Below are positions 16,719 to 58,640 of a stretch of DNA of 64,000 nt, piece after piece; the stretch's first letter is position 1; the number at the start of each line of letters is the position of its first letter. The DNA comes from Mantamonas sphyraenae STR306 (lineage: Eukaryota > Protista > CRuMs): positions 1 through 64,000 of the forward strand of contig JAPMXV010000073.1 in assembly GCA_026936335.1 (NCBI GenBank), in the 5' to 3' direction. Under the pieces are notes generated by a model, which saw nothing but the letters and a program-made list of their open reading frames with translations, searched no databases and was not told the origin of the DNA. The translations under genes and the position numbers were made by a program.

Positions 16719-17956
16719 TCACCTGGGTGCAGCACCCCTCCCCACCCACTCAATCACCCTCTCCATCACCTCATCTGGCAGTGTCACCCACCCTTCCCAC
16801 CCTCCTGCCTCCACGTACTCCTCCATCCCACCGGCTTCAAACATCGCCTCCCGCTCCTCCCCGTTCATCACCAACGCCACCTCCATCGCCTCATCCATCT
16901 GTCCACCCCATCCGATCCAATGCCACGCCTTCCTCCACCCTGCCTTCTTCACCATCTTCACCGTTTCCATCCTCGGTTTTGCGCCCCACGCCCGCAACAC
17001 CTCCACAATCCTCTCGTCCCCTCGCTTCACTGCTCGGTAGAGTGCCGTAGTCATCTCATGCTCCCCTGCAAATGTGTTCACAGGCACACCCCACTCTCTC
17101 AACGCAGCCATCTTCTCCACATGTCCACACTCCAAAAACTCCATATGCTGCTTCTTGTTTCTCGCCAACAGCGACTGCAAACCGTCATTGCGAACACCCA
17201 CGATGTTCCAGCACGACCGATTGACTTCCATTGCCTTTTTCAGTGCTGCTGCCCCCTTTCGACCGATTTTGTTGTCATCGAGGTACAGCAACTGCAAGCT
17301 GCGGTTCACAATCAGTGCCTCCGCCAGTGCTGCTGCTCCTTCCGCCCCGATACTGTTGGTACTGAGACTCAGTGTCTGCAAGCTGCTGTTCACCTTCAAT
17401 CCCTGTGCCATTGCTGCTGCTCCGTCTGCTCCGATGCTGTTGTAGCTGAGGGACAGTCTCTGCAGCTGGTTGTTCTCAGTCAGTGCTTGCCCAAGTGCTG
17501 CTGCTCCTTCTTCCCCGATTCTGTTGCCGTCGAGGTACAAGCTCTTCAAGGTGTGGTTCTCACTCAGTCCCTGTGCAAGTGCCGCCATTTGTCCCGCGTT
17601 GATGCAGCTGTAGCCAAGGGCCAGGGTCTGTAAGCCACTGTTCTCGGACAGTGCCTGTGCCAGCGCGGCTGCTCCTTCTGCTCCGATGCGGTTGCACCTG
17701 AGCCGCAGGGATTTCAAGGTGCTGTTCTTCCCTAGCGCCTTGGCCAGCGCTACCATCTCATTGTCTTCTAGCCCGATGTCATGAATATTCGTCTCCTATG
17801 CCCCACGTGTCAGCACACACTCCGTTGTTGCCCTTGAGGTCACCCTGCGTTCCAGTCCCAACCCACCTCTCCTTCCGCTTCCAGTGCACTGCCAATCCGT
17901 TCATGATCCCCACTCTGCAGCAGTTCCACCCATTCATCCATTTCCAGCGAGCTCAT
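16719..17956 (-). CDS. RI/NLRC3-type LRR (6) + ankyrin-like + C-terminal F-box-like protein
   Basis: Exon 1 at 17956-17867 (MSSLEMDEWVELLQSGDHERI), intron 17866-17796, in frame with ORF 16719-17756. 28-aa LRRs, TALYRAVKRGDERIVEVLRAWGA, WVTLPDEVMERVIEW. Confidence 0.85.
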
Positions 17957-19263
17957 TACGTCTGCGTTGCCTGTTTGTGAGCGTGTGTGCACCAGCTTCC
18001 CCTCCCTCCTCACCCGCCTTCCTCCACCTTCTCCCCTCTACAAGTTCTCCATCCACCCAATTTACCTACCTTGTGATTGTGTGAGAATGTACCGGTTGTC
18101 AGCTGCGTTGCATGCTGCTGCTGGGCTTGCCAAGTGTCTCCTGCACCGCCAAGTCCCTTCCCTCCCAGCCCCGACGTGCCATTGTTTGCTGACTGCCCGA
18201 TGCGTCCTACGCATCGCACAGCAAGTCACTGAATGGATTGCCGAGGCATGGCCTGCTGTGGTGCGTGCGGGGGCAGCACGCGACGTTCCTTCGCCACTTC
18301 CGTTCTTCGCCCCACCAGCCTCCTTCGTCCCGCCAAAACGGAAGAAGCAGGTTGAACGCAGCCCCAGCGCATCCACCAACCACCATTGCCAAATACGACA
18401 CACCGACACACACTATGGCATCAACCCACCTTCTTGGTCCAACTCGTTGCGTCAGTTGTGTTCGTCCTGCTTTCACACGCGCACTCTCTCCCACCCCACT
18501 GCCTGCTGCTGCACACCTGAATGCCTTCCCACCCCCCGTCCATCCAACATGGCCAGAACACTCCACCCATCCACAGGCACACACACAGCGCACTGCCCAA
18601 CCAACCAGCAGTGAATGCGCCTCTCATCACCCATGCCACGTTTAATGTCACCATCCCCACTTGCAGCCCTTGTTTTGTCCATGCCACACTCCTCTTCTCC
18701 TTCTCTCTGCCCCCTCTGATGCAACCATGGCATGGGAGGAGGTTTGGTAGGCGTGAACCCAACCTTTCTGCCCACCACGATGCATCCCCGTCATAGCACT
18801 CACCATGGATACCACGATCTCTCCATGGACAGTGTGTGGTGGCGTGGACCAACCCCGTTTCATGTGAAGATGGGCCCGAACACACGTCTGCGGAAGGCGT
18901 CACGAACACACTCACGCACACACGCACACGTTCACGACACGACACCCAATCGACCGACAGTCGCTCACCGTAACAGTGCACATGTCACCCACCGTGCTTC
19001 GTCGTCTCACTCATCCACCCTTCTCTGTCCTCCAAACACCCCCACCTTGGCAAACACAGACTGGCGTCGACCAAACACCTCCTCCCTTACTCCACCCTCC
19101 CACCCGTGTTCCCCTTCCCTCTTCAAACTCCCAATCCTGTGCCCACCCTTGACCCCAATGCCTCCTGGGCGACGACGGCGTCGGCCTGCCTCTCGCGTTC
19201 CCGGGAACTCGTCTCCTCTCCTTTGCCCTATCGCATCAAAATAACTTCCATTCTTCCTCCTGA

Positions 19264-20611
19264 TCACCCCAAACCTTCCATCCTCCTCGATATGTTGCCT
19301 CTTCTCAACCTCCGCTCCCTCCTCTTCTTCCTTTTCAACTCTCGCTCTTGCTTCCTCGCCTCGTCTGATCTACTCACAGCGACCCTTGCAGGTGCAGCAC
19401 CCCTCCCCACCCACCCAATCACCCTCTCCATCACCTCATCCGGCAGTGTCACCCACCCTTCCCACCCTCTCTCCTCCACGTACGCCTCCATCCCACCTTG
19501 CTCAAACATCGCCTCCCTCTCCTCCCCATTCATCACCAACGCCACCTCCATCGCCTCATCCACCTGTCCAACCCATCCGATCCAATGCCACGCCTTCCTC
19601 CACCCTGCCTTCTTCACCATCTCCACCGTTTCCATCCTCGGCGTCGCACCCCATGTTCGCAGCACCTGCACAATCCTCTCATCCCCTCGCTTCACAGCTC
19701 GCTCCAGCGCCGTAGACCTCTCGAAGTGTCGCCCCTCTGCAAACGTGTTCACAGGTACACCCCACTCCCTCAACGCAGCCATCTTCTCCACATCCCCACA
19801 CTCCAAAAACTCCAAGTGCTGCTTCCTGTTTCTCTTTGAAAGGGCCCCCAAAGCGTCATCGAATACGCCTACGATGTTCCAGCACGACCGGTTGTCTTCC
19901 ATTGCCTTTGTCAGTGCTGCTGCGCCTTCTGCCCTGATGCTGTTGCCGTGGAGGATCAGTACCTGCAGACTGTTGTTCTCAGCCAGCCCCTGCGCCAGTG
20001 CTGCTGCTCCTTGGTCCCCAATGCTGTTGTCCCAGAGGTTCAGTGTCTGCAAGCTGCTGTTCTCGCTCAGTGCCTGCCCCAGTGCTGCTGCTCCTTCGTT
20101 CCCGATGTCGTTTTTCCCGAGGTACAGTGTTTGCAAGCTGCTGTTCTCCACCAGTGCCTTCCCCAGTGCCGCTGCCCCTTCTACTCCGATGCTGTTCCAG
20201 CCGAGGTACAGTATCTGCAAGCTGCTGTTCTCCCTCAGTGCCTGCGCCAGTGCTGCTGCCCCTTCTGCACCGATGCTGTTGCTTCTGAGGTCCAGTATCT
20301 GCACGCTGCTGTTCTGAGCTAATGCCTCGGCAAGTGCCACTGCTCCTTTGTCTCCCACCTCCTCACTTGCAAGGCCCAATAGCTGTATGTGACGTGTGAG
20401 CACACGGTCCACCCATCCTACACACCATCACACCCGCAATACACCCTCCCTCCTTCCCTTCCCCTTGTGCGACGATCAACGTCACGCTCACCAACTCCCT
20501 CCCGATTTCTTTTTGCCAACTCACCATTCCCTCAGCCTCCAAAGCTTCCACAATCCGCCCATGGTCCCCGCTCTGCAACAGTTCCACCCATTCCTCTTTT
20601 CCCAAGCCCAT
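19264..20611 (-). CDS. RI-type LRR (5-6) + ankyrin-like + C-terminal F-box-like protein
   Basis: Exon 1 at 20611-20525 (MGLGKEEWVELLQSGDHGRI), intron 20524-20383, in frame with ORF 19264-20412. Confidence 0.87.
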
Positions 20612-23600: not shown

Positions 23601-24083
23601 GTGGGGGACGCTGCATGAAGCCACTGTGCGAGAACAACGCAGCACAACCACCGACAGTGCAGGGCGTGTGTGTAAGGAAGGATGTGGATGCAAATGGCAC
23701 TGTGTGCTGTGTGCCAGTGTGCCGAGGAACACGGTGACGGGGGCCAGGCTGGGTGGCAAAAAAGGCGGCTGCCACAATTGGCCACCCCGTTTTGCTGCCG
23801 CACACAACGGGCGGAGGATGGGAGCTGGCATTTTCCCATGTGGGAACGTGTGAAGCAACTGCATGTGGAGTACGACGAACACCCAAAGGAGGGATTGGAT
23901 GTGGAAGGGGAATTCTGGGAGGTGGTGGAGTGTGTGGGGGAGGATGAACGAGCAGAACGTAGGCCGGGGGATGGGGTGTCACCCACAGTGAACCACATCC
24001 ACATGCGCATGCATTTGCATGGCCAATTGAAGCAGTGTTTGCACAGTGTGGGCGTGTGAAACCCCTGTGGCCAGGAGGTGGCG

Positions 24084-24250: not shown

Positions 24251-24295
24251 CTTTGCTTGTCCCGAGACCTTGGACGCCGTTGACCCCAAGACAAA

Positions 24296-26865
24296 ATGTC
24301 CTCAAGTAGCTCATCGTCATCATTCGTGGGCTCCACATCCCCGACACAAGTGAATGCAGTGAAGAATGATCTGCGTGAATCCAAAGTGGAGCTGTCGTCG
24401 GCGGAAAGGAAGCTGGAGGAAGCGAAAGCCGAGCTGAATCAAGCGAAAGCCGAGCTGAATCAAGCGAAAGCCGAGCTGAATCAAGCGAAAGCCGAGCTGG
24501 AGGAAGCGAAAGCCGAGCGGAAGGAAGCAAAAGCCGAGCTGAAGAAGGCGAGAACAGCTGCAGAATCCTCGCCCGACAATTCAGACCACAAAGAAGACAA
24601 GTCGATTGCGAGGGAGGAGTGGAAGACCGCCTCGGCAGAAGTCGACACCAAGTTGGCAGAAGTCGACACCAAGTTGGCAGAAGTCGACACCAAGTCGAAA
24701 CTGGTGGCGGAACTGGAACAGATTGTGGTTAAGCACATGAAGGAACTCATCAGTGATGACACAACCGAGGAAATCAAAGGTGCGTGTGTTTTGCCGTGGA
24801 GGGAGTTGCAAAGCAGGAGCACTGACACCAACGTCGACAACGTACGCAGGAGGTGGAGAAAAGCAAAGTAGGTGGGGTGAGGGGCCTGTGTTTTACCAAG
24901 TTTGACCACTCTAACATCTCTGTTTGCACACAGAACAATACTGGAAGGCCTTGTTGCTCGATGTGGATTCGTTGGGGCGTGCCAGCATAGCCAAGAAGCA
25001 CAAAATCGAAGGGTACACGTCCTCATCGTTCCATGACGCCCTGGCAGATGAATTTGTGCTGCAGTACCTGTGCTCAGATCCTGTGAAGGAGGTGCTGGAG
25101 CAGCCGGAAAGTGAGCGAACGGGCGAAGTTTTCTTTTGGGAGAGCCAGACGAGCACAGAGGCGTATGGAGAGGCAGCTGTGCAGCATAGTGTGTGTGGGT
25201 GTCTGGATACAATTGCGAGAGAGGCATTCACAGGCTGTGAGATGTCTCTGTGCACCAGCCAGTGAGTTGGGTTGTGTGCTGGGGCTGCGCTTTTGGTCGA
25301 CACAGCAGCACTGACACGGCAGAGGACGACTTAGAATGGACACAGTTGGTCGAGTGAATGTTTTCATCAAGTCGAAGGATGAACCGTACACAGCACTGGC
25401 GGTGAAGCCGGACCAATGTCTGTGGGTCGCGCTGCACACGTCTGAACTAGTGTTCTGGGTGGCAGAGGGCAAGGTGGATGGGAAGCAGTCGGGTGAAGCA
25501 GACGATGTCAAACTGATGGCGCAGCTGGTGTCTGTGGTGAAGCATGCCCAGACTGTGTACCGCATGGTGGAGGGGGAGCAACCGAGGACACTGCACGCCA
25601 ACGCACTGTACTTTGAGGGGGACACATGCTGGCTGTACGTGGCAGAGTACCGCTTGGGAGAGAAAGGAGCGGATGGGGTGACGAAGCAGAAGTTTAAGGG
25701 GCTGTTTGAGCGTGGAGGGGAAACGCGGGAGAAGTTTGTGCAGAGCATCCAACGCAGAATGGCCATTGCACGTGAAGAAGTCGATTGGGCCAAACAATGC
25801 TGTGAAAAAGTGAACGAGGTGCAGCCATTCCGCATGTCAACGACCACGGGTAGGAGCAAGAGGAAACGGGATGAAGATGAAGACAACAACAACAACACCA
25901 ACAACACCAAGGAGGAAGAGGAGGGGGGCACTGGACATGACAAAAAGCGGCAGAGAGTGAGTGGGAGGCAGAGAGGAGGCAGCAAGGGCAAGGTGAAGGG
26001 CAAGGGCAAGAGCAAGCATGGAAGGAAGCGAAGCATCAAGGAACGCGCGGAATCGCTGGTGGATGGATTGGTGGCGGATGGGTTTGGACACACTGTGACT
26101 GAAGAGGGTGTGGGCAGTGCATACATCGGATATGGCGTGTACAAGGGGAAACGATGTGCGTGCAAGGTGCTACTGCTGGAGCAGGGACATCAAGAGCAGG
26201 AGTTTGAACTGATGCGCGAGGTGTGGGAAGATGGCAACACCCTCAGTGGCTGCAAGCATGTGGTGGATGTATGGGCAGCAGAGGAGGAGGATGGGTACGG
26301 GGTCGTGGTCATGCCACTCTTGGAAACATTTCCCGCGGATTGGGCCAAGCTACTGTCGCTGCGGGGCTTTGTCAATGGGTTGCGAGAGGCGGTGATGGAG
26401 ATGCATGCAGCCGGGTGGATGCATGGCGACATCAAACCAGGGAACGTGGGGCTGGACGAACACGGGAGGGTGGTGTTGTTTGACTTGGAGTTGGCATGCA
26501 GGACCGACAGGCGATGGAAGGACAGGGTGGGCACAGAAGGGTACATGGCACCCGAAGTATGCATGCGCGAGTGGTACGACGAGCGGTGTGACTACTGGAG
26601 TGCAGGGGCGACCATTCGCAAGGTGCGAGAGTATTGGGACGACAAGGGGCGGCAGGAGGATGGACAAGTGACGACGTTGGTGCAGGGGCTGATGATGGAC
26701 GATCCGGGGGAGAGAACGTGGCCACTGCTTGACAGGAGTTCTCCCCCAGGGTCATCCTCATCGCAGGTGGGGAGCGGGAGGAGGAGGAGAGGTTTGCATG
26801 GGAAGGAGCGGGTGGATGTGCAGGGTGAGGAGGGTGGGCAGGGCGGTGGTGTGCAGACGAGATAA
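24296..26865 (+). CDS. Crinkler/RHS-like protein: coiled coil + putative PD-(D/E)xK nuclease + Ser/Thr protein kinase
   Basis: Introns 24780-24849, 24868-24933 and 25262-25322 join three ORFs in frame. Heptads KAELNQA. KPDQ...VAEGK...MAQL. Kinase motifs ACKV, HGDIKPGN, LFDLE, GTEGYMAPE, DYWSAG. Confidence 0.82.
24421..24545 (+). repeat. 21-bp coding tandem repeats (heptads); second 21-bp array at ~24635-24695
   Basis: aagcgaaagccgagctgaatc x ~6 including variants; ggcagaagtcgacaccaagtt x ~3. Confidence 0.9.
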
Positions 26866-28445: not shown

Positions 28446-31400
28446 TCATTTTCCATTGCCTTCAAACGCTCTGTACACTTCCCTCAACTTTTTCAGTTCC
28501 TCTGTCTGCTGATGGTAAGGCACTATTGCGAAATATGCTCTGCCAGACACCAGAGACGCCAAAAAGTGGTCTCCTTCCTCGCTCCCCACATCCGTCCAGT
28601 CCTTCTCCCCAAACTCGTACCCACACTCCAACAGCACTTGACAAGGGATGAGCATCTCATCAGAATCCGATGAAAGCACATTGCGAGCCCATTCGCCCCA
28701 GTTTCCCCGTTGTGCATGGCACTCCCGCCGGACTTGCTCCACCTCTTCCCACCTCTTCTGCGTCTCCTCACCAAGTTTCTCTCCTTCCAAGGCCTCGTAC
28801 ATCCCTTTTGTCACCAACATATATGGGATGCGGGACACCAGTGCCTCCAGGACCTGCGGATCCTTGTGGTGCAGCAGCAGCTCCAGCAACATCCCGTTGT
28901 CCACCTTATCTCGGATTTCAAGCAGCTTCTCAAATGCCGTCGAGCTGTCCAACTCGTACAGATACGCATATGTTTCCTTCAAAGCTACCAAAGCTATTCG
29001 ACCGATTCCCGCCACCAACCGCTTCAACACGAGACTCAATCCTTGGTCAATAAGCCCACGGACGATGCGCCTCTGCAGCTCAACACTGTACTCACGGGCG
29101 CCGTGCGCACGAGGCACCATGATGCCCAGTACCTTCACAGGGAACCCACCGTCCAGCAGCTGCATCCACCGTTCGTCAGTCGCCAGTTCTTTCGACCACC
29201 ACCCTGTCTCCAGCTCTTCTGCGTTCACGAGCTTGCCCACCTTCACCACATCCGCGTTCTCCAGCCCCTCCAAGGCCACTGCCATCACCTCCGAGTCGTT
29301 GCAGGCGTCTTTCCTCACTGTTCTGCTCATCCACTGCCGCAGGTGATCCACAAAGGCTTCAGCCCCATTCTCTCTGCACACGCTCACACATCGATCCACC
29401 TGCTGTTGCCAACGTTTTTGCAAGCGTTTTCGAATGGCTTCGGCTCGTGCGTTCTCCTTCAGCTCGTTTGGCACCCACAATGCCCTGTCGTCGTCATCCA
29501 AGTTGTCCTTGGACAACAGGATTGACAACAGCCGTTCGTCATAGTCGCTTCTGTAGCACTCGAGCACGGTCTCGAGATCCAGTTGCGCCCTGTGCCGCCT
29601 CACTGCCCACAGTACAGCATCATTGCGTCCCCACGGCATCTCATTGGCATGCGTGAGGAATCGTTTCACATGCTCCTGCGGAAGCACCATGCCCTTGCTG
29701 TCAAGGACCGCCCTCAGATCACCAGGTGTGGCTACATCAATGACCGTCTCCCATGCCCCACGCTCCACCAACATTGCGATGGCTTGGTCACAGTAGCACT
29801 CCGCCACGGTGGCGTCATCCAACTGCTCCCCGTGCTGAGCCAACACCCAATCCGCAGTGAGCTTCTCTTCCTGGCCAAATCCTCGTGACCTCTTCATGAA
29901 TCGCAGCACATGCTCCTTCGGAAGCAGAATGCCCTTGCTGTCAAGGGTCGCCATCAGATCCCTTGGTTTGGCTACGTCAATAACCAACTCCCATGCCTCC
30001 CGTTCCACCAGCAAACGAATGGCTCCCATGTGTGGACGTACCTTGTACACCTTCGCCACAAAGTCGTCATCCAGCTGCTCCCCTTGGTGGCCCAGCACCC
30101 ACCCCACGACGACTAATGCATCTTCTCTTTGTGACCGCTCGAGAAATGGCAGCAAATGCGCCTGCGGAAACACCACGCCCATGCTGTCAAGTACTTCCGT
30201 CAGTTCCCTTGGTCTTGCAATGCCAGCGATTTCTTTCCAAGCCTCCCGTTCCACCAGGACAGCCAGAGGTTGCTGGTGATGATATCTTCGACACAGCTGT
30301 ACCACGGCATCGTTGTCCAGTTGTGACACGATTTGAGGTGTCCTGGCAATCCACTCCTCCGTTGCATGTTCTCCCTGTGCAGCCTTGAAGAAAAGTTTGG
30401 CATTTTCGACAAGTGTGGCGATGGCCTTCTCCTTGCCCTCCACCAGGACAAGTGCCCTGCGCAGTGCCTCGACTGGCGCATTCATGACCAGATCTTCAAA
30501 AGGTAGCGTGGACAGCACACATGAAACCAGTGCGTGGTTGTCCAGCACATCCTCCAACTCCTCCAACAGAGTCAAGTTCTCCTCCGACTCACAGACTGTT
30601 TGCAACGCCTTGGGCCATTCGGCTTCTGGCAGCATTTCTGCAATGCAGGCAAGCATGCCTTCGCAACCGCTCAGTCCCATTGCCATTGCTTCCTTCACAC
30701 CCGCAACGCCGTGTCCCACCAACACCTGCGTCAACGCAGTCGAGGTGTGCTCCACCCACCCGTCTCCCTCTTCCATTGCATACTTGACGTGTGCAACGAT
30801 GTTGGACAGTGGCACGTCTGCCAGTGTTCGTCCCGTCGAGTCCGCCTCACCCAAGAACACGTCCTCGACCCCCCGCCCGGCGTCCCCATCGTAAATCGCA
30901 TCCATATCGGCATCCATCTCCATCTCTTCCACGAAAAACTCCGGGGCACCTGCTGCCAACATAACACCTGCCATTGCCTCATCGAAAGGCAGACATTCCT
31001 TGACGACAGTCTGCAGAACGTAGAAATCTTCTTCGTCGTCCCAAATGTCGGCCAGTTCCGTTCGCCGCAGCACACAGTGCAGCGCAGGCAGTGTGCGTCC
31101 ACATAGAGATGGCAGTTCCTTTGCATACATGCGTGCAGGCACACTGTTCTCCCCAAACAGCTCAAAGAGGGCCCTGTTCAAGTACAGGCGGTTCAGCCGC
31201 GGCACACGGTGACGTTTGTCGCCAAACTTGACCACCACACCACCAATCTCGCCCAATATGGACACAAGGGTGCTCCTCAGTGGCTGATTGTCCACTTGGT
31301 ACAGGTTGCCCATGTCCACCATGTGTGTGTTGATGGAGAAGAGGGCAAGAGCACCAACCACGTCCAAACGAGGCACCACACGCTCCCACACCTCCACTGG

Positions 31401-31805
31401 CACCTGTGACAGCAGTGTCTCCATGCGAGAGGGCGGTGTTCTCTGGCGACGAGGGCGATGGGAGCGACGTGAGGCGGTGCTCTGTGCTGCGTCACCCAGC
31501 TGCTGCTGCTGGTTGCCGGATGCCGACCTGTCAGAAACACACGCAGCACACACAGGTTCAGCATGGCCATGTCAGCACAGAGAAAGGGTGGGGTGGGGAA
31601 GAATGGTTGAATGCTGTGCTTCCTACCTGCTTGTCTGTGTGTCGTCCACCGCCATGTCGTCTGTGTGGCTGGTGAGCTTTGCCAATGCTCGCATCTTGGC
31701 CACCCGCTGACGTTTGGGTGCAGGGGCGGCGTCCACCAATTGGCCACCTTCCTCATCAGCCACATCTTCCTCCTCTCCATCCACCGTGCTACGCTTGCGG
31801 GACAT
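28446..31805 (-). CDS. F-box protein with ~80-aa helical repeats, copy 1
   Basis: Exon 1 at 31805-31627 (MSRKRS...PKRQRV), 99-nt intron 31626-31528, in frame with the 1035-aa ORF. F-box motif LLSQVPVEVWERVVPRLDVVGALALFSIN. Confidence 0.85.
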
Positions 31806-32159: not shown

Positions 32160-35100
32160 CTACATTCCAAACGCACTGTACACTTCCCTCAGCCTTTCCA
32201 GTTCCTCTGTCTGTTCATCGTAATGTGCTAGTCTGCAATATGGTCTGCGGGACACTCTGATCCCCAAAGACGCCAAAAAGTTGGCTCCTTCCTCGCTTAC
32301 CCCATCCGTCCAGTCCTTCTCCCCAAACTCGTACCCACACTCCAACAGCACTTGACAAGGGATGAGCGTATCATCAAAACCCGATGACAGCACATTGAGA
32401 GCCCATTCGCCCCAGTCCTCCCGTTGTGCCTGGCACTCCTGGCGTACTTGCTCCACCTTGTCCCACCTCTTCAGCGTCTCCTCACCAAGTTTCTCTCCTC
32501 CCAAGGCCTCGTACATCCCTTTTGTCACCATCATGAATGGGGTGCGCGACACCAGCTCCTCCAGGACCTGCGGATCCTTGTACTGCAGCAGCAGCTCCAG
32601 CAACGTCAGCCTGCCCACTTCACCGTGCATTTCAAGCAGCTTCTCAAATGCCGTCGAGCTGTCCAACTCGTACAGATACGCATATGTTTCCTTCAAAGCC
32701 ACCAAGGCCATTCGGCTGGTTCCCGCCACCATCTGCTTCAATACGGGACTCATTCCTTGGTCAATAAGCCCACGGACGATGCGCCTCGGCAGTTCTTCGC
32801 CGTACTCATCGACTCCGTGCACATGAGGCATCATGATGCCCAGTCACAGGGAACCCATCGTCCAGCAGCTGCATCCACCTTTCGTCAGTGGCCAGCTCCT
32901 TCGACCACCACCCTTTCTCCAGCTCCTCTGCGTTCACAAGCTTGCCCACCTTCACCACATCCGCGTTCTCCAGCCCCTCCATGGCCACTGCTACCACCTC
33001 CAAGTCGTTGCAGGGTTCTTTCCTCACTGTTCTGCTCATCCACTGCCGTACGTAATTCACAAACGCCTCAGCCCCGTTCTCTCTGCACACGCTCACACAT
33101 CGATTCACCTGCTGTTGCCAGCGTTCTTGCACGCTCGTCCGAATGGCTGCGGCGAGTGCAGACCGCTTCAGCTCGGATGGCACCCACAATTCCCTGTCGT
33201 CGTCGTCGATGTTGTCCTTGGACAGCAGGCTAGGCAACAGCCTTTCGTCATAGTCACATCTGTAGCACTCGAGCACGGTCTCGAGCTCCAGTTGCGCCGT
33301 GTGCCGCTCCGCTGCCCACAGTACAGCATCCTCGCGCTCCCGAATTGCTTCATACGGCCCCGTTTTGCCAAGGACACGCGTGAGAAATGTCAGCACATGC
33401 TCCTTTGGAAGCACCATGCCGTTCCTGTCAAGGTGAGCCCTCAGAGCCCTAGGTTTGGCAACGTCAATAACCGTCTCCCATGCCTTCCGTTTCACCAGCA
33501 AACGAATGGCTTCCTTGTGCGGGTGTGTCCTGTACGTGTCCGCCACAGTGTCGTCATCCAGCTGGTCACCATGGTGGACTATCACCCACCTCACGGCGGC
33601 CTGGTCACCTCGTCGTGCGCGCTCGAGAAAAGGCAGCAGATGCTCCTTCGGAAGCACCATACCCTTTTTGTTAAGTACTTTCGTCAGTTCTTCTAGTATT
33701 GCAATGTCAATGGCTTCCTTCCATGCCTCCCGTTCCACCAGAACAGCCAGAAGTTCCTTAAGAGAATGCTCTTCATACAGCTGTACCACAGCATCGTTGT
33801 CCAGTTGTGACACGATTTGAGGAGTGGTGGCAATCCACTCCGCCGTTGTCCAATCCATCTGTGCAGCCTCGTTGAGCAGCTTGACGTGTTTGACAAGTGT
33901 GGCCATGGCCTTCTCCTCGCCCTCCACAAGGATGAGTGCCTTGTGCAGTGCATCAGCTGGTGCCTTCATCACAAGGGCTTCAAAAGAAAGCGTGGACAGC
34001 ACACATGAGACCAATGCATGGTTGTCCAGCACATCCTCCAACTCCTCCAACAGAGTCAAGTTCTTCTCCGACTCACAGACTGTTTGCAACGCCTTTGGCC
34101 ATTCGGCTTCTGGCAGCATTTCTGCAATGCAGGCAAGCATGCCTTTACACCCACTCAGTCCCATTGCCATTGCTTCCTTCACACCCGCAAGGCCATGGCC
34201 CACCAACACCTGCGTCAATGCGGAAGGTGTGTGCCGCACCCGCCCCTCTCCCTCTTCCATTGCATCCTTTACGCGTGCAACGATGTTGGACAGTGGCATG
34301 TCTGCCAGTGTTTGTCCCTTCGAGTCCGGCTTACCCAAGCACTCCTCGTCCGACCAGGTATTCCCGTCGTGGATTTCATCCCAGTCGGCATCCCTGTCCA
34401 AGCCTTCCACGAAATTATCCAAGACACCTGCTGCCAACATAACACCTTCCTTCGCCTCACGGAAAGGCAGACAATCCTCGACGACCAACAGCAGGTCGTA
34501 GAAATCTTCAAATTTCCAATCTTTGCTCAGTGTTGTTCGCCGCAGCACACAGTGCAGCGCAGGAAGTGAGCGTCCACACACACGCGGCAGATCCCTCGAA
34601 GACATGCGTGCAGGCACACAGTTCTCTCCAAACAGCTCAAACAGGGCCCTGTTCAAGTACAGGCGGTTCAGCCTCGGCACCCGGTGACGTGTGTCGCCAA
34701 ACTTGACCACCACACCACCACATTCACCCAATGCGGACACAAGGGTGCTCCTCAGTGGCTGATTGTCCACTTGGTACAGGTTGCCCATGCCCACCATGTG
34801 TGTGTTGATGGAGAAGAGGGCAAGGGCACCACCCACGTCCAAACGAGGCACCACGCGCTCCCACACCTCCACTGGCACCTGTGACAGCAGTGTATCCACG
34901 CGAGAGGACGGTGGTTTCTGGGGACGGGAGCGACGTGAGGCGGTGCTCTGTGCTGTGTCACCCAGCTGCTGCTGCTGGTCGCTGGATTCCGACCTGTCAG
35001 AAGCACACCCAGCACACACGGGTTCACCCTGGCCATGTCAGCACAGATAAAGCATGGAGTGGGTGAGAATGGGTGGCTTTTGTGCTTCCTACCTGCTTGT

Positions 35101-43685: not shown

Positions 43686-44867
43686 TCATGTGCTGTGCCC
43701 ACCATGTGCCTCCCGCATGTGGTCATACGTGGCCCCACTTGTGGTGAAGCCAAGGCCACACTTGTAGCACACATGGGTGCCACACACACACGCCACATGG
43801 TTGCATCCGCTCTCCTTGGCCAGCCCATGCCCACACGTGGGACACTGCCTCCACCCACTGCCTCGCCACAGCATCCCCAGCAGCTCATCCCCACGTCGGT
43901 TGTCCCTTGCCCACTGCTGGTACTTGCGACAGTCATGGTTGCCCCTTCCGTCGTCATCCCAGTGCACCTTGCACCCGTGGCACCACGCCTTGCCACATCG
44001 CTCACACTCGCATCGTGTGCTGCCCTGTCTCCGTGCCACCGCAGGATCCACCTTGCCCTCGCAGTCTGGCGTCACACACGCATGCCACTTGGCTGTGCGC
44101 ACATCCCATGCCAGCTTGGCCAGCGCCTCCTTGTCCCGCTTGCTCTGCAGCACCCTCATCGCCGTCTTGGTCGACACCCTCACCTCCTTCTTCTTCTGCT
44201 GCCCCTTCCCACCCGCCCAGCACATGCGACAGCGCAGAGGCATCATCCGCGACTCCACCTGCGCTGCAATGTCCATCCTGGCACAGTCCAGACACATCCT
44301 GTGCTCACATCGGGTGCCCAGAAAGGCCATCCCACTCTGCTCCTTGCTCTCCTCGCACACAGCGCAAGGGTAGCAGTGGTGGAACTTGCACTGGTCTCCG
44401 TGCTTGCAATCCTCCCCATGCTTGCACACACGCACTCCCTCGGCCCCACACGCCTTGCATCCTCCCTTGCTCTTGCTCTTGCTCCTGTTCTTGCTCTTGC
44501 TCTTCTCCACCTGTGTCTTGCTGCCTGCCCGTGTGCTCAGTGTCACTGTGCTCCGTCCCATGTGCACCTGTGTCACGCAGTGGTGGTCGCGGCATCGCTC
44601 TGGGCCGTACCGACACTTCTCGCCCCATGTGCAGTTCTTGTCCTTGGTCGTCTTTGCCCTGCATGTCCCACACACCCTCATCCTCCTGGTGCTGCTGCTG
44701 CTGCTGCTCTTGTGCTGTGTCTGCTCCTTGTCTGTGTCTGTGGTGCTGGTGGTTGTGCAGTGGTGGTTGCGACACTCCCCGGGGCCAAATCGGCACCGTG
44801 TGCCCCAGGTGCAGTTCTTCGGCTTGTCCGTCTGTGTTCCGCATGTGTTGCATGTGCGTGTGCTCAT
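43686..44867 (-). CDS. Zinc-finger header(s) + RBR (RING1-IBR-RING2) E3 ligase
   Basis: MSTRTCNTC...CRNHHC, two more related fingers, CAVC...CEHRMCLDC...CRMC, CVTPDC...CERCGKAWCHGCKVHW, QCPTCGHGLAKESGCNHVACVCGTHVCYKC. Confidence 0.87.
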   Translation of the reverse strand: MSTRTCNTCGTQTDKPKNCTWGTRCRFGPGECRNHHCTTTSTTDTDKEQTQHKSSSSSSTRRMRVCGTCRAKTTKDKNCTWGEKCRYGPERCRDHHCVTQVHMGRSTVTLSTRAGSKTQVEKSKSKNRSKSKSKGGCKACGAEGVRVCKHGEDCKHGDQCKFHHCYPCAVCEESKEQSGMAFLGTRCEHRMCLDCARMDIAAQVESRMMPLRCRMCWAGGKGQQKKKEVRVSTKTAMRVLQSKRDKEALAKLAWDVRTAKWHACVTPDCEGKVDPAVARRQGSTRCECERCGKAWCHGCKVHWDDDGRGNHDCRKYQQWARDNRRGDELLGMLWRGSGWRQCPTCGHGLAKESGCNHVACVCGTHVCYKCGLGFTTSGATYDHMREAHGGHST

Positions 44868-45197
44868 CCTGCGATTGAGTTGGTGTGGACATCGCATCGC
44901 CATCCTGGTCGCTTTTCCCTCTGCAGTGAGTGTGTGTGTGCAGTTGCGGAGAGTGCAGTGTTTGTGTGCAGTTGCCGAATTTCCTGGGGCCCTGTTCAAA
45001 AATCCGCCCACCGCCCACTGCCCCCACCCACCCAACCCAACCCAACCCAACCCAACACACACACACAACCATGAGCACACGCACATGCAACACATGCGGA
45101 ACACAGACGGACAAGCCCCAGGACTGCACATGGGGCACACGGTGCCGATTTGGCCCCGAGCAGTGTCGCAACCACCACTGCACAACCACCAGCACCA
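44741..45197. repeat. 127-bp inverted repeat (44741-44867 / 45071-45197) starting at two divergent ATGs; (CCCAA)n in the spacer
   Basis: By eye, the arms differ at about 6 positions. Confidence 0.92.
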
Positions 45198-46096
45198 ACA
45201 CACCCAACACCGCCGCCGCCGCCGCCAAGACGACCAAGGCAAAGCCAGGAAGGAGCATGACCCACCGATCCAGCAAGATCACCACGGAGACGAAGCGAGT
45301 GGCCAAGGCGCCGTTTGACCTGGTCTTCCTGGTCGACACGAGCACGTCCATGCAGGGCGATCGCATGTCTGCAGCCGCCGCTGGGTTCCGCGCCGTTGTG
45401 GGTGCCCTGCGCGATTGCGACCGGGTGAGCCTGTACACCTTTGCGGACAAGGTGAGGAGGGTGTTTGGGCCACTCAAGGCAGCCAAGGTGGATCTGGACA
45501 AGGCGGTGGGCACGCTGGAGGAGGCGTGTGGCAGCCATGGCAGTGGGGTGGAGCAGTTGCTGCAGGCACGGATGACGGATGAGGATCTGGCGAGGGTGTT
45601 GCGGGATCAGGCAGGCAGCAGCGCCTTCCAGCCGGACGGATACACGGCGCTGTACGACGGCATGGACACGGTGATGGACGCCATGGCACAGTGGCAGACA
45701 CGGAGCAACGCAGGAAAGAGTGCAGGCGCCAACCTGGTGGTGATCACCGATGGGGAGGACACGGCGTCGGTGCAGGCTGGGGCCAGGGACGTGACAGCCA
45801 AGCTGGGGGCAAGTGGCATCCGCAACTTTCACATGCACTTTGTGGGAGTGGGGCTGGACAGGAGGACGGGGGCAAGGTATGCCAGCATGTGCAAGGCGTG
45901 GACACACACACGCATGTGGCACAGCAAGGACGCAGAGGATCTGGGCACGCATCTGAAGCGCATCAGCACGATGGTGGTGGAGCAGATGGTGCAGGAGGAC
46001 AGGGAGGTCAAGGTGCATGTGCGCGAGCGACGCAGGCGCAAGGTGATTGGCCAGCGAAGGGTCAAGGACGATGGGGAGGGCAGTGGGAGGAAGTGA
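45071..46096 (+). CDS. Zinc-finger header + von Willebrand A domain protein
   Basis: MSTRTCNTC header. MIDAS motifs FLVDTSTSM, GYTALYDGM, LVVITDGED. Confidence 0.87.
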   Translation: MSTRTCNTCGTQTDKPQDCTWGTRCRFGPEQCRNHHCTTTSTNTPNTAAAAAKTTKAKPGRSMTHRSSKITTETKRVAKAPFDLVFLVDTSTSMQGDRMSAAAAGFRAVVGALRDCDRVSLYTFADKVRRVFGPLKAAKVDLDKAVGTLEEACGSHGSGVEQLLQARMTDEDLARVLRDQAGSSAFQPDGYTALYDGMDTVMDAMAQWQTRSNAGKSAGANLVVITDGEDTASVQAGARDVTAKLGASGIRNFHMHFVGVGLDRRTGARYASMCKAWTHTRMWHSKDAEDLGTHLKRISTMVVEQMVQEDREVKVHVRERRRRKVIGQRRVKDDGEGSGRK

Positions 46097-48670: not shown

Positions 48671-50632
48671 ATGAGTGAAGGACTGAGCGATGAGGAATGG
48701 ATAAATTTGCTGCATGGCGGTGATGAGCAAGCAATCAGTGAAGCCTTGGCAAGTGCTGGCAAAGTAAGTGTGGTGGATTTGAGGAGCATCCCTTCCGTGA
48801 TGAGGTCATGAGTGGCAGTAGACTGGGAAACTGACGGCACATCGCAGGAGCTGGACCTCGAGGACATCATGATCGGTGTCGAAGGTGCAGCTGCGTTGGG
48901 CACAGCACTGGCACAGAACAGCACATTGCAGAAGCTGTACCTCAGTCACAACAAGATCGGCGACGAAGGGGCAGCTGCGTTGGGAACGGGACTGGCACAA
49001 AACAGACCATTGCAGGAGCTGGACCTCAGAGGCAACCAGATTGGCGACGAAGGGGCAGCTGCGTTGGGAACGGGACTGGCACAGAACAGCACATTGCAGG
49101 AGCTGGACCTCAGAGGCAACCAGATTGGCGCCGAAGGGGCAGTTGCGTTGGTCACGGGACTGGCACAGAACAGCACATTGCAGAAGCTGTACATCAGTTA
49201 CAACAAGATCGGCGACGAAGGGGCAGCTGCGTTGGGAACGGGACTGGCACAAAACAGAACATTGCAGGAGCTGGACCTCAGAGGCAACCAGATTGGCGCC
49301 GAAGGGGCAGTTGCGTTGGTCACCGGACTGGCACAGAACAGCTCATTGCAGGTGCTGAACCTCAATGACAACAAGATCGGCGACGAAGGGGCAGCTGCGT
49401 TGGTCACGGGACTGGCACAAAACAGAACATTGCAGGAGCTGTACCTCGGAGGCAACCAGATTGGCGCCGAAGGGACAGCTGCGTTGGCCACAGCACTGGC
49501 ACAGAACAGAACATTGAAGGAGCTGGCCCTCGGTGGCAACAAGATCGGGGACGAAGGGGCAGCTGCGTTGGGAACGGGACTGGCACAGAACAGCACATTG
49601 AAGACGCTGGACCTCAGGAACAACCAGATTGGTGCCGAAGGGGCAGCTGCGCTAGGCAGAGTACTGGCACAGAACAGCACATTGCAGAAGCTGGACCTCA
49701 ACCACAACGAGATCGGGGACGAAGGGGCAGCTGCGTTGGCCACAGTACTGGCACAGAACAGTACATTGCAGGTGCTGGACCTCAACCACAACGAGATCGG
49801 GTACGAGGGGGCAGCTGCATTGGGCACAGCACTGGCACAGAACAGAACATTGCAGGTGCTGGACCTCAACCACAACGAGATCGGGGACGAAGGGGCAGCT
49901 GCGTTGGGCACAGTACTGGCACAGAATAGCACCTTGCAGAAGTTGAACCTCAACCACAACGAGATCGGGGACGAAGGAGCAGCTGCGTTGGGAACGGGAC
50001 TGGCACAGAACAGAACATTGCAGACATTGTGGATGTCTTCCTCGATCCCAAAGCTGACACGCAACAATCTGGCTCGCAATACCCAAAAGGCAACTGCCTT
50101 TGTCAACTCTGTCCGCAATGGTGATTTGGTGACCATGCAAGAACTCTTTGCATGGGGCGTTCATGTTGATGCGCTGGTGGACAAAGAACATTCCAAAACC
50201 CCGCTGCTAATCGCTGTTCAAGCAAATCAAGAAAAAGCTGCGAGAGCCTTGTTGGAGCATGGTGCCACTGTGACCCCTGATGTCAGGGAATGGATGGATG
50301 ATGTGGGCTGGTCAAGCGAGTGGCACTTTCTCTGGAGCCCACAGCTGGACAAGCAAATGGAGACGGCCATGGTGATGAACATGGAGGAGCGGGAAGTGAT
50401 GTTTGGCGCAGGGAGCATGGCCGAGTACGAGCCCACGGCTGAGTGGTGCACCCAGCCTGACGAGGTGTTATCGAGGGTCATGGGATGGCTGATACGACTG
50501 CCTGAGGAGCAGTCATCGACGCCAGCTGGTGGCAATCAAGCACGCAAGCGCCAGCTCGATGACGACGACGACGTAGTCAACACTACAGGCAACAATACCA
50601 GCACGAACGATACCAAACGGCAGCGTGTGTAG
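48671..50632 (+). CDS. LRR (14) + ankyrin + C-terminal F-box-like protein
   Basis: Exon 1 at 48671-48763 (MSEGLSDEEWINLLHGGD), intron 48764-48847. KTPLLIAVQANQEKAARALLEHGA, WCTQPDEVLSRVMGWL, ends KRQRV. Confidence 0.88.
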
Positions 50633-52732: not shown

Positions 52733-54184
52733 ATGAGTGAACGATTGATCAAGGAGGAATGGAGAAAGTTGCTGCATGGCGGTGATGAGCAAGCTATCAG
52801 TGAAGCCCTGGAACGTGCTGGCAAAGTATGTGTGTTGGATTTGAGGGGCATCCCTTCCATGGTGAGGTCATGAGTGGCAGCAGACTGGGAAACTGACAGC
52901 ACAATGCAGGAGCTGAACCTCCAACGCAACCAGATCGGGGACGAAGGGGCAGCTGCGTTGGGCACAGCACTGGTACAGAACAGCACATTGCAAGTCCTGA
53001 AGCTCGGAGGCAACGAAATCGAGGACCAAGGGGCGGCTGTATTGGGCACAGCACTGGCACAGAACAGCACAGTGCAGGTTCTGGAGCTCAATGGCAACCT
53101 GATCGGGGACGAAGGGGCAGATGCGTTGGCCACAGCACTGGCACAGAACAGCACCTTGCAGGTGCTGAGCCTCGGTGGAAACCTGATCGGGGACGAAGGG
53201 GCGGTTGCGTTTGGTTCGGAGCTGGCACAAAGCAGCACATTGCAGAAGCTGGTGCTTAATTACAACCAGATCGGGGACGAAGGGGCAGCTGCGTTGGGAA
53301 CGGGACTGTCACACAACAGTACATTGCAGGTACTGGAGCTCAGTGGCAACGAGTTCGGGTACGAGGGGGCAGCTGCATTGGGCACAGCACTGGCACAGAA
53401 CAGAACATTGCAGGTGCTGGAGCTCATGGACAGCCAGATTGGCGACGAAGGGGCAGCTGCGTTGGGCACAGCACTGGCACAGAACAGAACATTGCAGATG
53501 CTGAACCTCTTGAACAATCAGATTGGGGACGAAGGGGCAGCTGCGTTGTTCACCGGACTGGCACAGAACAGAACATTGCAGAAATTGCTGATTCCCTCTA
53601 TCCCATCGCTGACACGCAGAAATCTGGCTCGCAATACCCAAAAGGCAACTGCGTTCGTCAACTCTGTCCGCAATGGTGATTTGGTGACCATGCAAGAACT
53701 ATTTGCATGGGGCGTCCACGTTGATGTGCTGGTGGGCGAGGAACGTTTGATCACCCCGCTGCTGATCGCTGTTCAAGCAAATCAAGCAAAAGCCGCGAGA
53801 GCCTTGTTGGAGCATGGTGCCACTGTGACCCCTGCTGTCAGGGAATGGATGGATGATGTGGGCTGGTCACCCCAGTGGCACTTTCTTTGGAGCCCACAGC
53901 TGGACAAGCAAGTGGAGACGGCCATGGTGATGAACATGGAGGAGCGGGAAGTGATGTTCGGCGCAGGGAGCATGGCCGAGTACGAGCCCACGGCTGAGTG
54001 GTGCACCCAGCCTGACGAGGTGGTAACGAGGGTCATGGGATGGCTGATACGACTGCCTGAGGACCAATCACCGACGCCAGCTGGTGGCAATCAAGCACAC
54101 AAGCGTCAGCACGACGACGACGACGTAGTCCACACTACAGGCAACGATACCAGCATGCACGATACCAAACGACATCGTGTGTAG
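52733..54184 (+). CDS. LRR (8) + ankyrin + C-terminal F-box-like protein
   Basis: Exon 1 at 52733-52825, intron 52826-52909, in frame with ORF 52874-54184. Confidence 0.88.
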
Positions 54185-54803: not shown

Positions 54804-55142
54804 ATGAGCACACGCGTTTGCCAGACTTGCCACCAGACCACAGACCGAACCCAGGATTGTCGCTATGGCCAGCGATGCCGGTATGGAGCCGAGCGATGCC
54901 GGTTCCACCACTGCCACCACCACCACCACCGGTCACGATGGAGTGGTGAGCACAGCCACCGGACGCAGCCGCAGCAGCAGCAGCAGCAGCAGAGACACAC
55001 GAAGAAGCAGCGGGAGAAGAAGCAGGAGGCAGGAGACGAGGAGCAGGCAGAGGGAGCCATGACCGAGCAGCTGATGCAGGTGGTCGTCACCGTCAGCACA
55101 GCTGTGGTCACCAGCATCCTCCGATCACGCGGATGGATCTGA
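54804..55142 (+). CDS. Small zinc-finger-header protein, same protein sequence as 51250-51588
   Basis: Identical translation. Confidence 0.7.
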   Translation: MSTRVCQTCHQTTDRTQDCRYGQRCRYGAERCRFHHCHHHHHRSRWSGEHSHRTQPQQQQQQQRHTKKQREKKQEAGDEEQAEGAMTEQLMQVVVTVSTAVVTSILRSRGWI

Positions 55143-56308
55143 GCCCACCTGCCCCCCCCCTGGACGACACACGTGGAGGAGGAGAGGAGAAGGAGAGACT
55201 GGGAGAGAGATGGAAGAGAGAAAGTGAGCGGGTGATTCTCTCTTTTTATCCCTTTTGGCTTGTGTCTTGGTTCCCCGCACCACCCCCAATGTGTGGCAAT
55301 GACACCAATCAAGAGATGAAAAAAAAAAAAGAAAGAACCCACCCACAGATGTGTGCGTGGGGTGGGGTAGGGTGTGTGTGTGTGTCGGTGCTGGTCATGG
55401 TGGATCACCATCCATTGTCTCGGGCCATCCGCTGCAGAGCTCGCACCAGCTGCACTCGGTCATCCCCCGACGCTCGCCCAGGGTCGATGTGGGCGTTGGC
55501 CAGAAAGGCACGGTTGCCTCGGGCCAGGTTGGGAGCTCCGTCTGCGTTGATGGCCATCCACCGGTAGTCACCGCCGGTGGTCCAGACTCGGGCGCGTCGC
55601 TGTCGCTCGTTGGGCATCTTGTGTGTGCTTGCTGTGGGTTGGGGTTGGGTAAGCGGGGTGCGCTGGTGTCATTGTGGGTCCCATGGTGCCATTTTGTACC
55701 CGTCAGGTGCCATCCACATGCTTCTGGGATCGCAGCCATGGCTTTCACGGTGTGCAGTCTCCCATCGACCTCCACCGCCAGAATTCCTGATTCCCCACAC
55801 CGCACCCGCCAGTCGACGAAAACGGACACTTGGATGGTATTGGATGGTCCCACACGACGCATGTGTTCGATGGGAGCCCATGCATGTGGTTCATTGCATG
55901 ACACATGTGTCTGTGCATTGTCCAGGTGGATCGGGTGGGTGGAACAAGGAGATGGCTTTGGCCACGACGATGGGTTTGTAGAACGGCCAATTGGGCGCGG
56001 TGTTGAGTCGCAGGATGGCGGGGAACAACAATGGGAACCATTGTGGATGACCATGGATGAGGGAATATCAGCAGCTGCGGTGCGCAATGGGGACTACGCT
56101 TATCCTTTCACCCGTGGGGTTCATGGAGGGAGGGCTTCATTGAGAGTTGTGGAGAAAGACGCACTGAGAGAGAGTGTGTGTGTGTGTTCAGTGACGTACA
56201 GGGGGTGGTGAGGTCGGGAAGGGTCATTGTGTTTGGCCAAAACCCCTCTCGCGTCACACTTGATCTTTGGCTGCTTGCTCACGCGGCCGACGTACAGGCA
56301 CGTTCAGG

Positions 56309-58640
56309 ATGAGTGAAGGACTGAGCGATGAGGAATGGAGAACGTTGCTGCATGGCGGTGATGAGCAAGCCATCAGTGAAGCCTTGGCAAGTGCTGGCAA
56401 AGTATGTGAAGACATGAGGGCATCCCTTCTGTGGCTTGAGAGTGGCAGTGGACTGGGAAACTGACAGCACATTGCAGGAGCTGGACCTCAGCTACAACAA
56501 GATCGGCGACGAAGGGGCAGCTGCATTGGGTACAGCACTGGCTCAGAACAACACATTGCAGGAGCTGAACCTCCGTTTCAACCAAATCGGCGACGACGGG
56601 GCAGCTGTATTGGGCGCAGGACTGGCACAGAACAACACATTGCAGGAGCTGAACCTTGGACTCAACAGGATCGGCGGCGAAGGGGCAGCTGGGTTGGGAA
56701 GAGGACTGGCCCACAACAGAACATTGAAGGTGCTGAATCTCATGAGCAACCAGATGTGGGACGAAGGAGCAGCTGGGTTGGGCACAGGACTGTCACAGAA
56801 CAGCACATTGCAGGAGCTGGACCTCGGTGACAACCAGATCGGGGATGAAGGGGCAGCTGCGCTGGGAACAGGGCTGGCACAGAACAGTACATTGCAGGTA
56901 CTGGTGCTCGGACGCAACAAGATCGGGAACAAAGGAGCATCTGCGTTTGGCACAGCACTGGCACAGAAGAGCACAGTGCAGGTGCTGGAGCTCTGGAACA
57001 ACCTGATCCGGGTCGAAGGGGCGGTTGCGTTGGCCACAGCACTGGCACAGAACAGCACATTGCGGGAGCTTACCCTCAAGGAGAACCAGATCGGGGACGA
57101 AGGGGCAGCAGCGTTGGGCACAGGACTGGCACAGAACAACACGTTGGAGGTGCTGATCCTCCAGGACAACCAGATTGGCGATGAAGGGGCAGCTGCGCTG
57201 GGAACAGCGCTGGCACAGAATAACACGTTGGAGGTGTTGATCCTCCAGGACAACCAGATTGGCGATGAAGGGGCAGTTGCATTGGGAACAGGACTGGTAC
57301 AGAGCAGCACATTACAGGTGCTGGAGCTCAGGAACAACAAGATTGGCGCCGACGGGGCAGTTGCATTGGGCACAGCGCTGGCACAGAACAACACGTTGGA
57401 GGTGCTGATCCTCCAGGACAACCAGATTGGCGATGAAGGGGCAGCTGCGCTGGGAACAGGGCTGGTACAGAGCAGCACATTACAGGTGCTGGAGCTCAGG
57501 AACACCAAGATTGGCGCCGCAGGGGCAGTTGCATTGGGCACAGCGCTGGCACAGAACAACACGTTGGAAGTACTGAACCTTAGGCGCAACCAGATCGGCG
57601 ATGAAGGGGCGACTGTGCTTGGCACAGAACTGGCACACAGCAGCACATTGCGGCAGATGGACCTCAGTTACAACCAGATCGGCGACGAAGGGGCAGCTGC
57701 ATTGGCCATAGGACTGGGAAAGAACAACACATTGGAGGTGCTGTACCTCAGAGGCGAGTTGATCCGGGACGAAGGGGCAGCTGCGTTGGGCACAGCACTG
57801 GCAGAGAACAGCACATTGCAGGAGCTGTACCTCGGTGACACTCTGATCGGCGACAGAGGGGCAGCTGCGTTGGGCACAGCACTGGCACAGAACAGCTCAT
57901 TGCAGGTACTGGAGCTCAAGAACAACAAGTTTGGCGACAGAGGGGCAGCTGCGTTGGGCACGGCACTGGCAGAGAACAGCACATTGCAGGAGCTGTACCT
58001 CGGTGACACTCTGATCGGCGACAGAGGGGCAGCTGCGTTGGGCACAGCACTGGCAGAGAACAGCTCATTGCAGGTACTGGAGCTCAAGAATAACACGATC
58101 GGCAAAGTAGGGGCAGCTGCGTTGGGCACAGCACTGGTACAGAACAGAACATTGCAGAAATTGCGGATGTCTTTCTCGATACCTCGCATGCCACGCCACA
58201 ATCTGGCTCGCAATACCCAAAAGGCAACTGACTTTGTCAACTCTGTCCGCAATGGTGATGTGGTGACCATGCAAGAACTCCTTGCATGGGGCGTTCATGT
58301 TGATGCGCTGGTGGGCGGGGAACATCCAACCACCCCGTTGCTGATCGCTGTTCAAGAACATCAAGAAAAAGCGGCGAGAGTCTTGTTGGAGCATGGTGCC
58401 ACTGTGACCCCTCGTGTCAGAAAACGGATGGATGAACTGGGCTGGTCACCCCGGTGGCACTTTCTTTGGAGCCCACAACTGGACAAGCAAATGGAGACGG
58501 CCATGGTGATGAACATGGAGGAGCGGGAAGTGATGTTTGGCGCAGGGAGCATGGCTGAGTACGAGCCCACGGCTGAGTGGTGCACCCAGCCTGACGAGGT
58601 GTTAACGAGGGTCATGGGATGGCTGGCACGACTACCATAG
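56309..58640 (+). CDS. LRR (20) + ankyrin + C-terminal F-box-like protein, tail cut short by TAG
   Basis: Exon 1 at 56309-56401, intron 56402-56477, in frame with ORF 56436-58640. Confidence 0.88.

Follow-up and report, generated by a model that had tools for sequence, protein, structure and literature searches.

The window described here, positions 1 to 64,000 of contig JAPMXV010000073.1 of Mantamonas sphyraenae STR306 (assembly GCA_026936335.1), carries five two-exon genes whose predicted products join a short header, an array of leucine-rich repeats (LRRs) of the ribonuclease-inhibitor (RI) type, two ankyrin (ANK) repeats, and a Trp-rich C-terminal tail. A sixth copy retains only the tail. 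These genes probably form a subtelomeric family that is specific to its lineage and duplicates in tandem, encoding intracellular repeat proteins in which a variable binder is joined to a constant end. By class, the products would be RI-type LRR/ankyrin repeat proteins whose C-terminal domain is a novel orphan, encoded by a subtelomeric diversifying family. A first-pass annotation of this DNA had described the five genes and had taken the end of the tail for a C-terminal F-box, making the proteins substrate receptors of SCF (Skp1-cullin-F-box) ubiquitin ligases. Its shared header exon, variable number of RI-type LRRs, and ankyrin-like unit are all borne out below, as is the broader idea of a family of variable-LRR binders; the F-box is not. 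The range assigned to the family, 16719-58640, does hold the five genes, but the sixth copy lies outside it, and an unrelated kinase gene, a three-copy family of large open reading frames (ORFs), an RBR gene, and a VWA gene lie inside it.

Exactly five LRR loci are detected in the window by tblastn with the LRR part. Their main ORFs are located at 16719-17756 (-), 19264-20412 (-), 48812-50632 (+), 52874-54184 (+), and 56436-58640 (+). The gene models and the tail-only copy are as follows:

17867..17956, minus strand: gene 1 exon 1, 30-aa header or cap
16719..17795, minus strand: gene 1 exon 2, with ~7 LRRs, two ANK repeats, and tail (terminal motif at 16737-16778)
20525..20611, minus strand: gene 2 exon 1, 29-aa header or cap
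19264..20382, minus strand: gene 2 exon 2, with 6 LRRs, ANK unit, and tail (terminal motif at 19402-19443, then a basic extension resembling a nuclear localisation signal, NLS)
48671..48763, plus strand: gene 3 exon 1, 31-aa header or cap
48848..50632, plus strand: gene 3 exon 2, with 14 LRRs, ANK unit, and tail (terminal motif at 50456-50497, then an acidic/basic extension ending KRQRV)
52733..52825, plus strand: gene 4 exon 1, 31-aa header or cap
52910..54184, plus strand: gene 4 exon 2, with 8 LRRs, ANK unit, and tail (terminal motif at 54011-54052; product modelled with AlphaFold2)
56309..56401, plus strand: gene 5 exon 1, 31-aa header or cap
56478..58640, plus strand: gene 5 exon 2, with 20 LRRs, ANK unit, and tail (terminal motif at 58590-58631)
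5143..5388, minus strand: relic or free-standing ORF of 81 aa, limited to the last ~63 tail residues (match to the tail of gene 1 at tblastn E 8e-28, ORF listing, and alignment)
5152-5193, minus strand: terminal motif of the relic, PNEVMERVTGWVGR

Subfamily A consists of gene 1, gene 2, and the relic, and subfamily B of genes 3-5. Each gene opens with a header exon that begins with ATG, runs for 29-31 codons, and follows the pattern (E/D)EW..LL..GD...I..AL...G. Header exons match one another across the two subfamilies (E 7e-6 to 1e-4 in a local tblastn search of the window with two header peptides of ~30 aa each as queries); a Pfam scan that covered header exons, whole proteins, and isolated tails gave LRR_6 and a weak ANK match only. 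The introns of genes 1-5 are 71, 142, 84, 84, and 76 nt long, respectively, and of the GT..AG type, with donors GTAAGT, GTATGT, GTGAGT, or GTGGGT and YAG acceptors. All are in phase 0, and the joined frames are free of internal stops and open over 388, 401, 625, 455, and 751 codons. Exons were entered separately in searches and folding, the joined models being checked for frame only.

What varies among these proteins is the LRR array, which ranges from 6 to 20 units among the genes. The Pfam family LRR_6 (PF13516) matches the proteins at E 4e-27 to 4e-116 over 5-18 stretches. Exon 2 begins at the first beta-strand of the array, and the repeats are uniform, with a strict period of 28 aa (84 nt) that Tandem Repeats Finder (TRF) likewise detects. 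AlphaFold2 (AF2) was given two inputs, the ANK unit with the tail and the whole product of gene-4 exon 2. The latter is modelled as an alpha/beta LRR solenoid in which strand and helix alternate (predicted local distance difference test score, pLDDT, 85-98). Among the 42 84-nt units of subfamily B, the x positions of xLxLxxNxIG show a proportion of nonsynonymous differences (pN) of 0.37-0.61, and the scaffold positions have values of 0.02-0.06 (L and I), 0.12 (N), and 0.11 (G). Replacements clustered at the beta-strand x positions are the pattern expected if the concave face of the solenoid were a diversifying binding surface. As in other LRR proteins, the variable positions would form a ligand-binding concave face, and a hypervariable face of this kind would bind diverse ligands. 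The arrays themselves may grow and shrink by unequal recombination between the 84-nt units.

In their 28-residue alpha/beta repeats (L..L.L..N.IGD.GA..L), the proteins resemble other RI-type LRR proteins (e.g., ribonuclease inhibitor, NLRC3, and RanGAP-like proteins). A word search with the whole gene-4 ORF returned matches to E 2.6e-122 from many protists and from animals. The 933 whole-protein matches listed mostly cover the LRR half only (50-55% of the query), breaking off where the LRRs end or close to it, and in none of them do the header, ANK unit, and tail occur together. Two proteins from this search, P0089 and P0090, combine LRRs with ankyrin repeats; a comparison of P0089 with the tail revealed no similarity. 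The family also differs from RI-type LRR proteins in having no NACHT or other signalling domain. Neither NACHT nor NB-ARC gives a Pfam match, and the gene models leave no room for a central NTPase domain.

Two ankyrin repeats are positioned between the LRRs and the tail. Pfam reports Ank_2 at E 6e-6, with 27.2 bits against a cut-off of 27.3, and AF2 models the unit at pLDDT 75-93. The top 50 Foldseek matches in the PDB are all ankyrin-repeat proteins, mostly DARPins, with root-mean-square deviations of 1.3-2.6 A over 60-90 columns, at E values of only 0.03-0.15 (best 0.03). The tail is unfolded or of low confidence in the AF2 models, and the Foldseek result thus speaks for the ANK part only.

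The constant end is a tail of ~75 residues with the pattern GW...WH...W..Q.D...E.A.VMN.EERE.MF..G.M..Y......W.T.PDEV..RV..W..R. Identity between the tails of subfamilies A and B is ~45%, and tblastn matches between them have E values of 1e-24 to 1e-27, a similarity far beyond chance. Across the six copies 27 columns are invariant, including the P, E, V, R, V, and W of the terminal motif, which in subfamily A reads LPDEVMERVIEWV. The tail and end motif had been recognized in the first-pass annotation, and the tail stands as a conserved element; the motif as then written needs amending, however, as its fifth variable position is Val in gene 4 and the relic reads PNEV. The ratio of nonsynonymous to synonymous rates (dN/dS) in the tail is 0.27 between genes 1 and 2.

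Conserved sequence stops 3-8 residues past the terminal helix. Stop codons follow the aligned motif after 5 codons in gene 1 and after 2 codons in both gene 5 and the relic, and nucleotide homology between genes 1 and 2 ceases 11 nt beyond the motif. Genes 2-4 run on into non-homologous acidic/basic stretches that are NLS-like. In gene 5 the stop is found two codons past the motif, where genes 3 and 4 have Glu, and a remnant of the gene-3/4 extension persists out of frame at 58645-58770. Either the extension is dispensable or gene 5 is starting to decay. A search for a downstream exon shared among the paralogues, a hidden third exon that might encode helices 2 and 3 of an F-box, found none.

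Relatives of the tail were sought widely. A word search with the tail gave no match, and none was obtained in Pfam, in IMG/VR and JGI metagenome contigs, or, at E<=10, with the tail profile against PDB sequences. A full HMMER search with the tail profile of 1.84 billion representative proteins returned four matches, none of them a real relative. Two of these, P0001 and P0002, are spurious matches to bacterial proteins with GWxFxGW repeats, each matched at many places; the other two, P0003 and P0004, show the same multi-stretch pattern. A giant-virus origin was also considered, and it was dropped because the IMG/VR scans yielded no match to the tail or to the neighbouring large-ORF family. As judged from these sequence comparisons, the tail appears to be a novel orphan C-terminal domain, with no detectable relatives in the collections searched.

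The window begins with (CCCTAA)n, the C-strand of a TTAGGG-type telomere, at 1-121 (20.5 copies, 93% match; TRF and direct reading). The 64 kb are thus a chromosome end, and the LRR family is subtelomeric. Tandem segmental duplications of 83-95% identity form a mosaic across the window, those of the LRR genes having 83-89% identity. The paralogues are young, with synonymous divergence (dS) of 0.10-0.20. Subtelomeric variant gene families share with this one the tandem paralogues and truncated relics beside a telomere, the variation in repeat number, and the fast divergence. A difference is that nothing here points to surface exposure or switching, and the products appear to be intracellular.

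In the proposed mechanism, the ANK unit and tail would act as a module that couples all paralogues to one common partner or location, whatever the LRR face binds. The terminal amphipathic helix predicted at PDEV..RV..W..R would be the likeliest docking element of this module, and the basic C-terminal extensions of genes 2-4 may serve as nuclear localisation signals. If this description holds, a little-studied lineage, the CRuMs, keeps a fast-evolving binder family at a chromosome end, which would provide a handle on how recognition diversity is generated in free-living protists. The constant end would be a domain with no counterpart in public sequence data and a new orphan domain to characterise.

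Several observations weigh against this description. In the AF2 model the tail has helices, including one over PDEV..W, but they are undocked and have pLDDT values of 26-47, and on this model the tail could be disordered instead of a domain. Tail dN/dS is 0.67-0.82 among genes 3-5, where substitutions are few, which suggests weak or relaxed constraint on the tail in the youngest copies. The ratios of nonsynonymous to synonymous differences (pN/pS) in the subfamily-B units (2.4, 3.4, and 1.3 at positions 3, 6, and 8) are a crude per-codon count across units; gene conversion confounds this count, which falls short of a formal test of positive selection. The splice models of the five genes, each the sole canonical in-frame option found, are predictions from DNA alone. 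Lastly, the true size and distribution of the family are viewed through one 64-kb window.

Some of these points would also fit a different explanation, that the copies are decaying subtelomeric duplicates with no selected function, their tails being conserved through recent common descent. The low dS between neighbours, the tail dN/dS among genes 3-5, the truncated relic, and the loss of the C-terminal extension in gene 5 all agree with decay. Five open two-exon frames with intact splice signals do not, nor does a tail that is only ~45% identical between subfamilies yet keeps its invariant columns. The low dN/dS between genes 1 and 2 and the strong conservation of scaffold LRR positions beside variable x positions also argue for selected function, and general decay is decidedly unlikely. 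The family of variable binders with a constant end remains the preferred description, and the partner of that end can be considered separately.

One proposal for such a partner is Skp1, which is predicted on the reading that the terminal helix is a minimal C-terminal F-box (helix 1 only) and that the family consists of reverse-polarity SCF substrate receptors. The terminal helix does resemble helix 1 of an F-box, and the motif of subfamily A, LPDEVMERVIEWV, fits LPxE(I/V)xxx(I/V) and the hydrophobic positions that follow. Gene 1, gene 2, and the relic have both the LP dipeptide and the helix-1 hydrophobic pattern (LPDEV/LPNEV..RV..WV). In genes 3-5, however, three of the six copies, the Leu of this dipeptide is Gln. 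The pattern itself carries little information: unrelated proteins totalling 132,033 residues contain LP.E[IVL]...[IVL] 3 times, and composition predicts ~1.3 occurrences per 100,000. Chance would thus yield the pattern about 1-2 times per 100,000 residues.

The F-box domain itself is not present. Neither the whole proteins nor the isolated tails match F-box, F-box-like, F-box_4, PRANC, or SOCS_box in Pfam at E<=10. The same scan detects the F-boxes of two controls (PF00646 in P0106 at E 4.5e-5; PF12937 in P0111 at E 3.2e-6), both of them protist LRR_6 homologues with an N-terminal F-box, and the negative result is therefore not a failure of the tool. A comparison of the tail with a two-sequence F-box alignment by hhalign, a very weak test, likewise gave no match. 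With conservation ending 3-8 residues past a single helix and no shared downstream exon, an F-box of three or even two helices, normally a module of ~40-50 residues, is absent. Two defining features of an F-box, the match to the family profile and the three-helix module, are thus lacking. The SCF-receptor reading would seem to come down to a ten-residue resemblance, and none of the tests run lends it support.

FBXL-type SCF receptors, together with P0106 and P0111, resemble the family described here in using an LRR array as the substrate-binding part, and P0106 and P0111 join LRRs of this type to a module that recruits a ligase. Their F-box, in contrast, is N-terminal, ~40 residues long, and detected by Pfam, whereas the family here has one C-terminal helix and no profile match. 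Poxviral ANK/PRANC proteins and the Orientia Ank F-box proteins are similar in layout, their repeats giving way at the very C-terminus to a short helix of the LPxE(I/V) type, and they too occur as multi-copy families in genome termini. The tail shares with PRANC (PF09372) its C-terminal place after ankyrin repeats but does not match the PRANC profile. The poxviral and Orientia proteins have a long ANK array, whereas the family here has LRRs and two ANK repeats and is encoded by a free-living eukaryote instead of a virus or a bacterium living inside cells.

According to a review, poxviral F-boxes are truncated to two helices, and CP77, with the first helix alone, is reported to bind Skp1 (PMC4353913). 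Most Skp1 contacts are made by helix 1 of the F-box and the loop before it (PMC4353913). In the family described here there is no F-box or PRANC match and the Leu is not conserved; still, given the example of CP77, the tail might dock on Skp1. The HECT and RBR ligase genes that also occur in the window, and a very similar N-terminal VPVEVWERVV in the adjacent three-copy ORF family, may be counted in favour. That N-terminus is not itself recognized as an F-box, and its hhalign alignment to the tail spans no more than 10 columns (P 0.069). On balance, Skp1 is an unlikely partner for the tail.

Were it true, a free-living, deep-branching eukaryote would have its own reverse-polarity cullin-RING receptors, combining a hypervariable LRR array with a one-helix, Skp1-docking F-box mimic, a scenario that is quite unlikely as a whole. 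Such receptors would be a cellular counterpart, and possibly an evolutionary source, of the minimal C-terminal F-boxes of poxviruses and Orientia, and would bear on how the ANK/F-box effectors of viruses and bacteria arose. The combination of LRRs with an F-box mimic could also serve as an innate, ubiquitin-coupled recognition system.

The adjacent family comprises three tandem paralogues of 737-1035 aa on the minus strand (28446-31553, 32806-35019, and 35628-38525), with 84-89% DNA identity, no Pfam domain, and a truncated middle copy. After the first Met, the N-terminus reads VPVEVWERVVPRLD....L.L..IN..M, beginning with VPVEVWERVV, and resembles an F-box placed at the N-terminus; it goes unrecognized both in Pfam (E<=10) and in a profile search of the PDB. 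A helix of the (L/V)PxE(I/V/L) type is also found near the C-terminus, after the LRRs, in three unrelated protist LRR_6 proteins returned by the word search (P0068 at residue 450, P0074 at residue 409, and P0116 at residue 282). These proteins have no Pfam F-box, and the placement of the helix may reflect either chance or a recurrent arrangement.

Elongin C has been considered as a second candidate partner. The terminal helix would then be a BC-box-like docking motif, as in ASB proteins, VHL, and viral ANK/BC proteins, and the family would consist of Cul2/Cul5 substrate receptors. A C-terminal position is normal for such receptors, and ankyrin repeats followed by a C-terminal box are the architecture of ASB (ANK-SOCS box) and viral ANK/BC proteins, in which the C-terminal helix recruits the cullin adaptor (PMC6232478). 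The BC-box consensus is [TSP]-L-x3-[CSA]-x3-hydrophobic (PMC6232478), and T-L-PDE-V-MER-V of subfamily A has this spacing. The [CSA] position, however, is occupied by Val in every copy, and Gln takes the place of the Leu in genes 3-5, half of the copies. No SOCS_box or VHL match is obtained, no conserved Cul box follows the helix, and chance alone produces the pattern very often (169 times per 100,000 residues). Elongin C is thus a very unlikely partner.

The first-pass annotation had also allowed for effectors, and repeat proteins with terminal ligase-hijacking motifs do typify the effectors of intracellular pathogens (PMC4353913). Secreted or injected proteins aimed at another organism are nevertheless extremely unlikely here. 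The N-terminus is acidic, the header included, and shows no signal-peptide-like segment in the gene models; the probable source of the DNA, Mantamonas, is a free-living marine bacterivorous flagellate (PMC10492846).

In general, the window has the character of the published M. sphyraenae genome, whose GC content is 59.19%, whose contigs end in TTAGGG, and whose genes mostly consist of one exon (PMC10492846). G+C content in the window is ~58%, genes are mostly single-exon, and the few introns are short and of the GT..AG type. Pfam identifies eukaryote-type genes for HECT, RBR/IBR, VWA, and protein kinase domains. Rfam and tRNA scans of the window were empty. An exact look-up of six window ORFs in the protein collection gave no match; the predicted proteome of M. 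sphyraenae is deposited on Figshare only (PMC10492846), which would account for this absence. Together with the relatives of the HECT ORF, the base composition, telomere repeat, and gene structure point to M. sphyraenae or a close mantamonad as the source; the TTAGGG repeat notwithstanding, the DNA is not taken to be human.

The HECT ubiquitin-ligase ORF is located at 9286-10488 on the minus strand (Pfam E 1e-59). Its best relatives are EukProt transcripts of Mantamonas plastica with 58% and 57% identity, one of which has a SPRY domain. G+C content at third codon positions is higher in this ORF (0.83) than in the subtelomeric families (0.65-0.69). The protein-kinase ORF, at 25336-26865 on the plus strand (Pkinase E 2e-18), lies between the LRR pair of genes 1 and 2 and the large-ORF family and contains a long, acidic/basic, N-rich insert.

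A second subtelomeric family occupies the region 303-8979, with plus-strand ORFs at 789-2786, 2476-5112, and 5806-9015 that are built of ~1.1-kb internal tandem modules with 86-96% identity. Pfam recognizes no domain in its proteins, whose C-termini carry a poly-Ser stretch and KRQRLE, an NLS-like ending that resembles the terminal KRQRV of LRR genes 3 and 4. A 171-nt tandem repeat is found at 13218-13687 (2.7 copies, 87% match). Farther along, an inverted repeat of 127 nt (44741-44867 and 45071-45197, 95% complementary) gives two divergent genes the same N-terminal Cys/His-rich, CCCH-like module. One is the RBR/IBR ligase-like ORF at 43686-45242 on the minus strand, and the other is the VWA-domain ORF at 44930-46096 on the plus strand.

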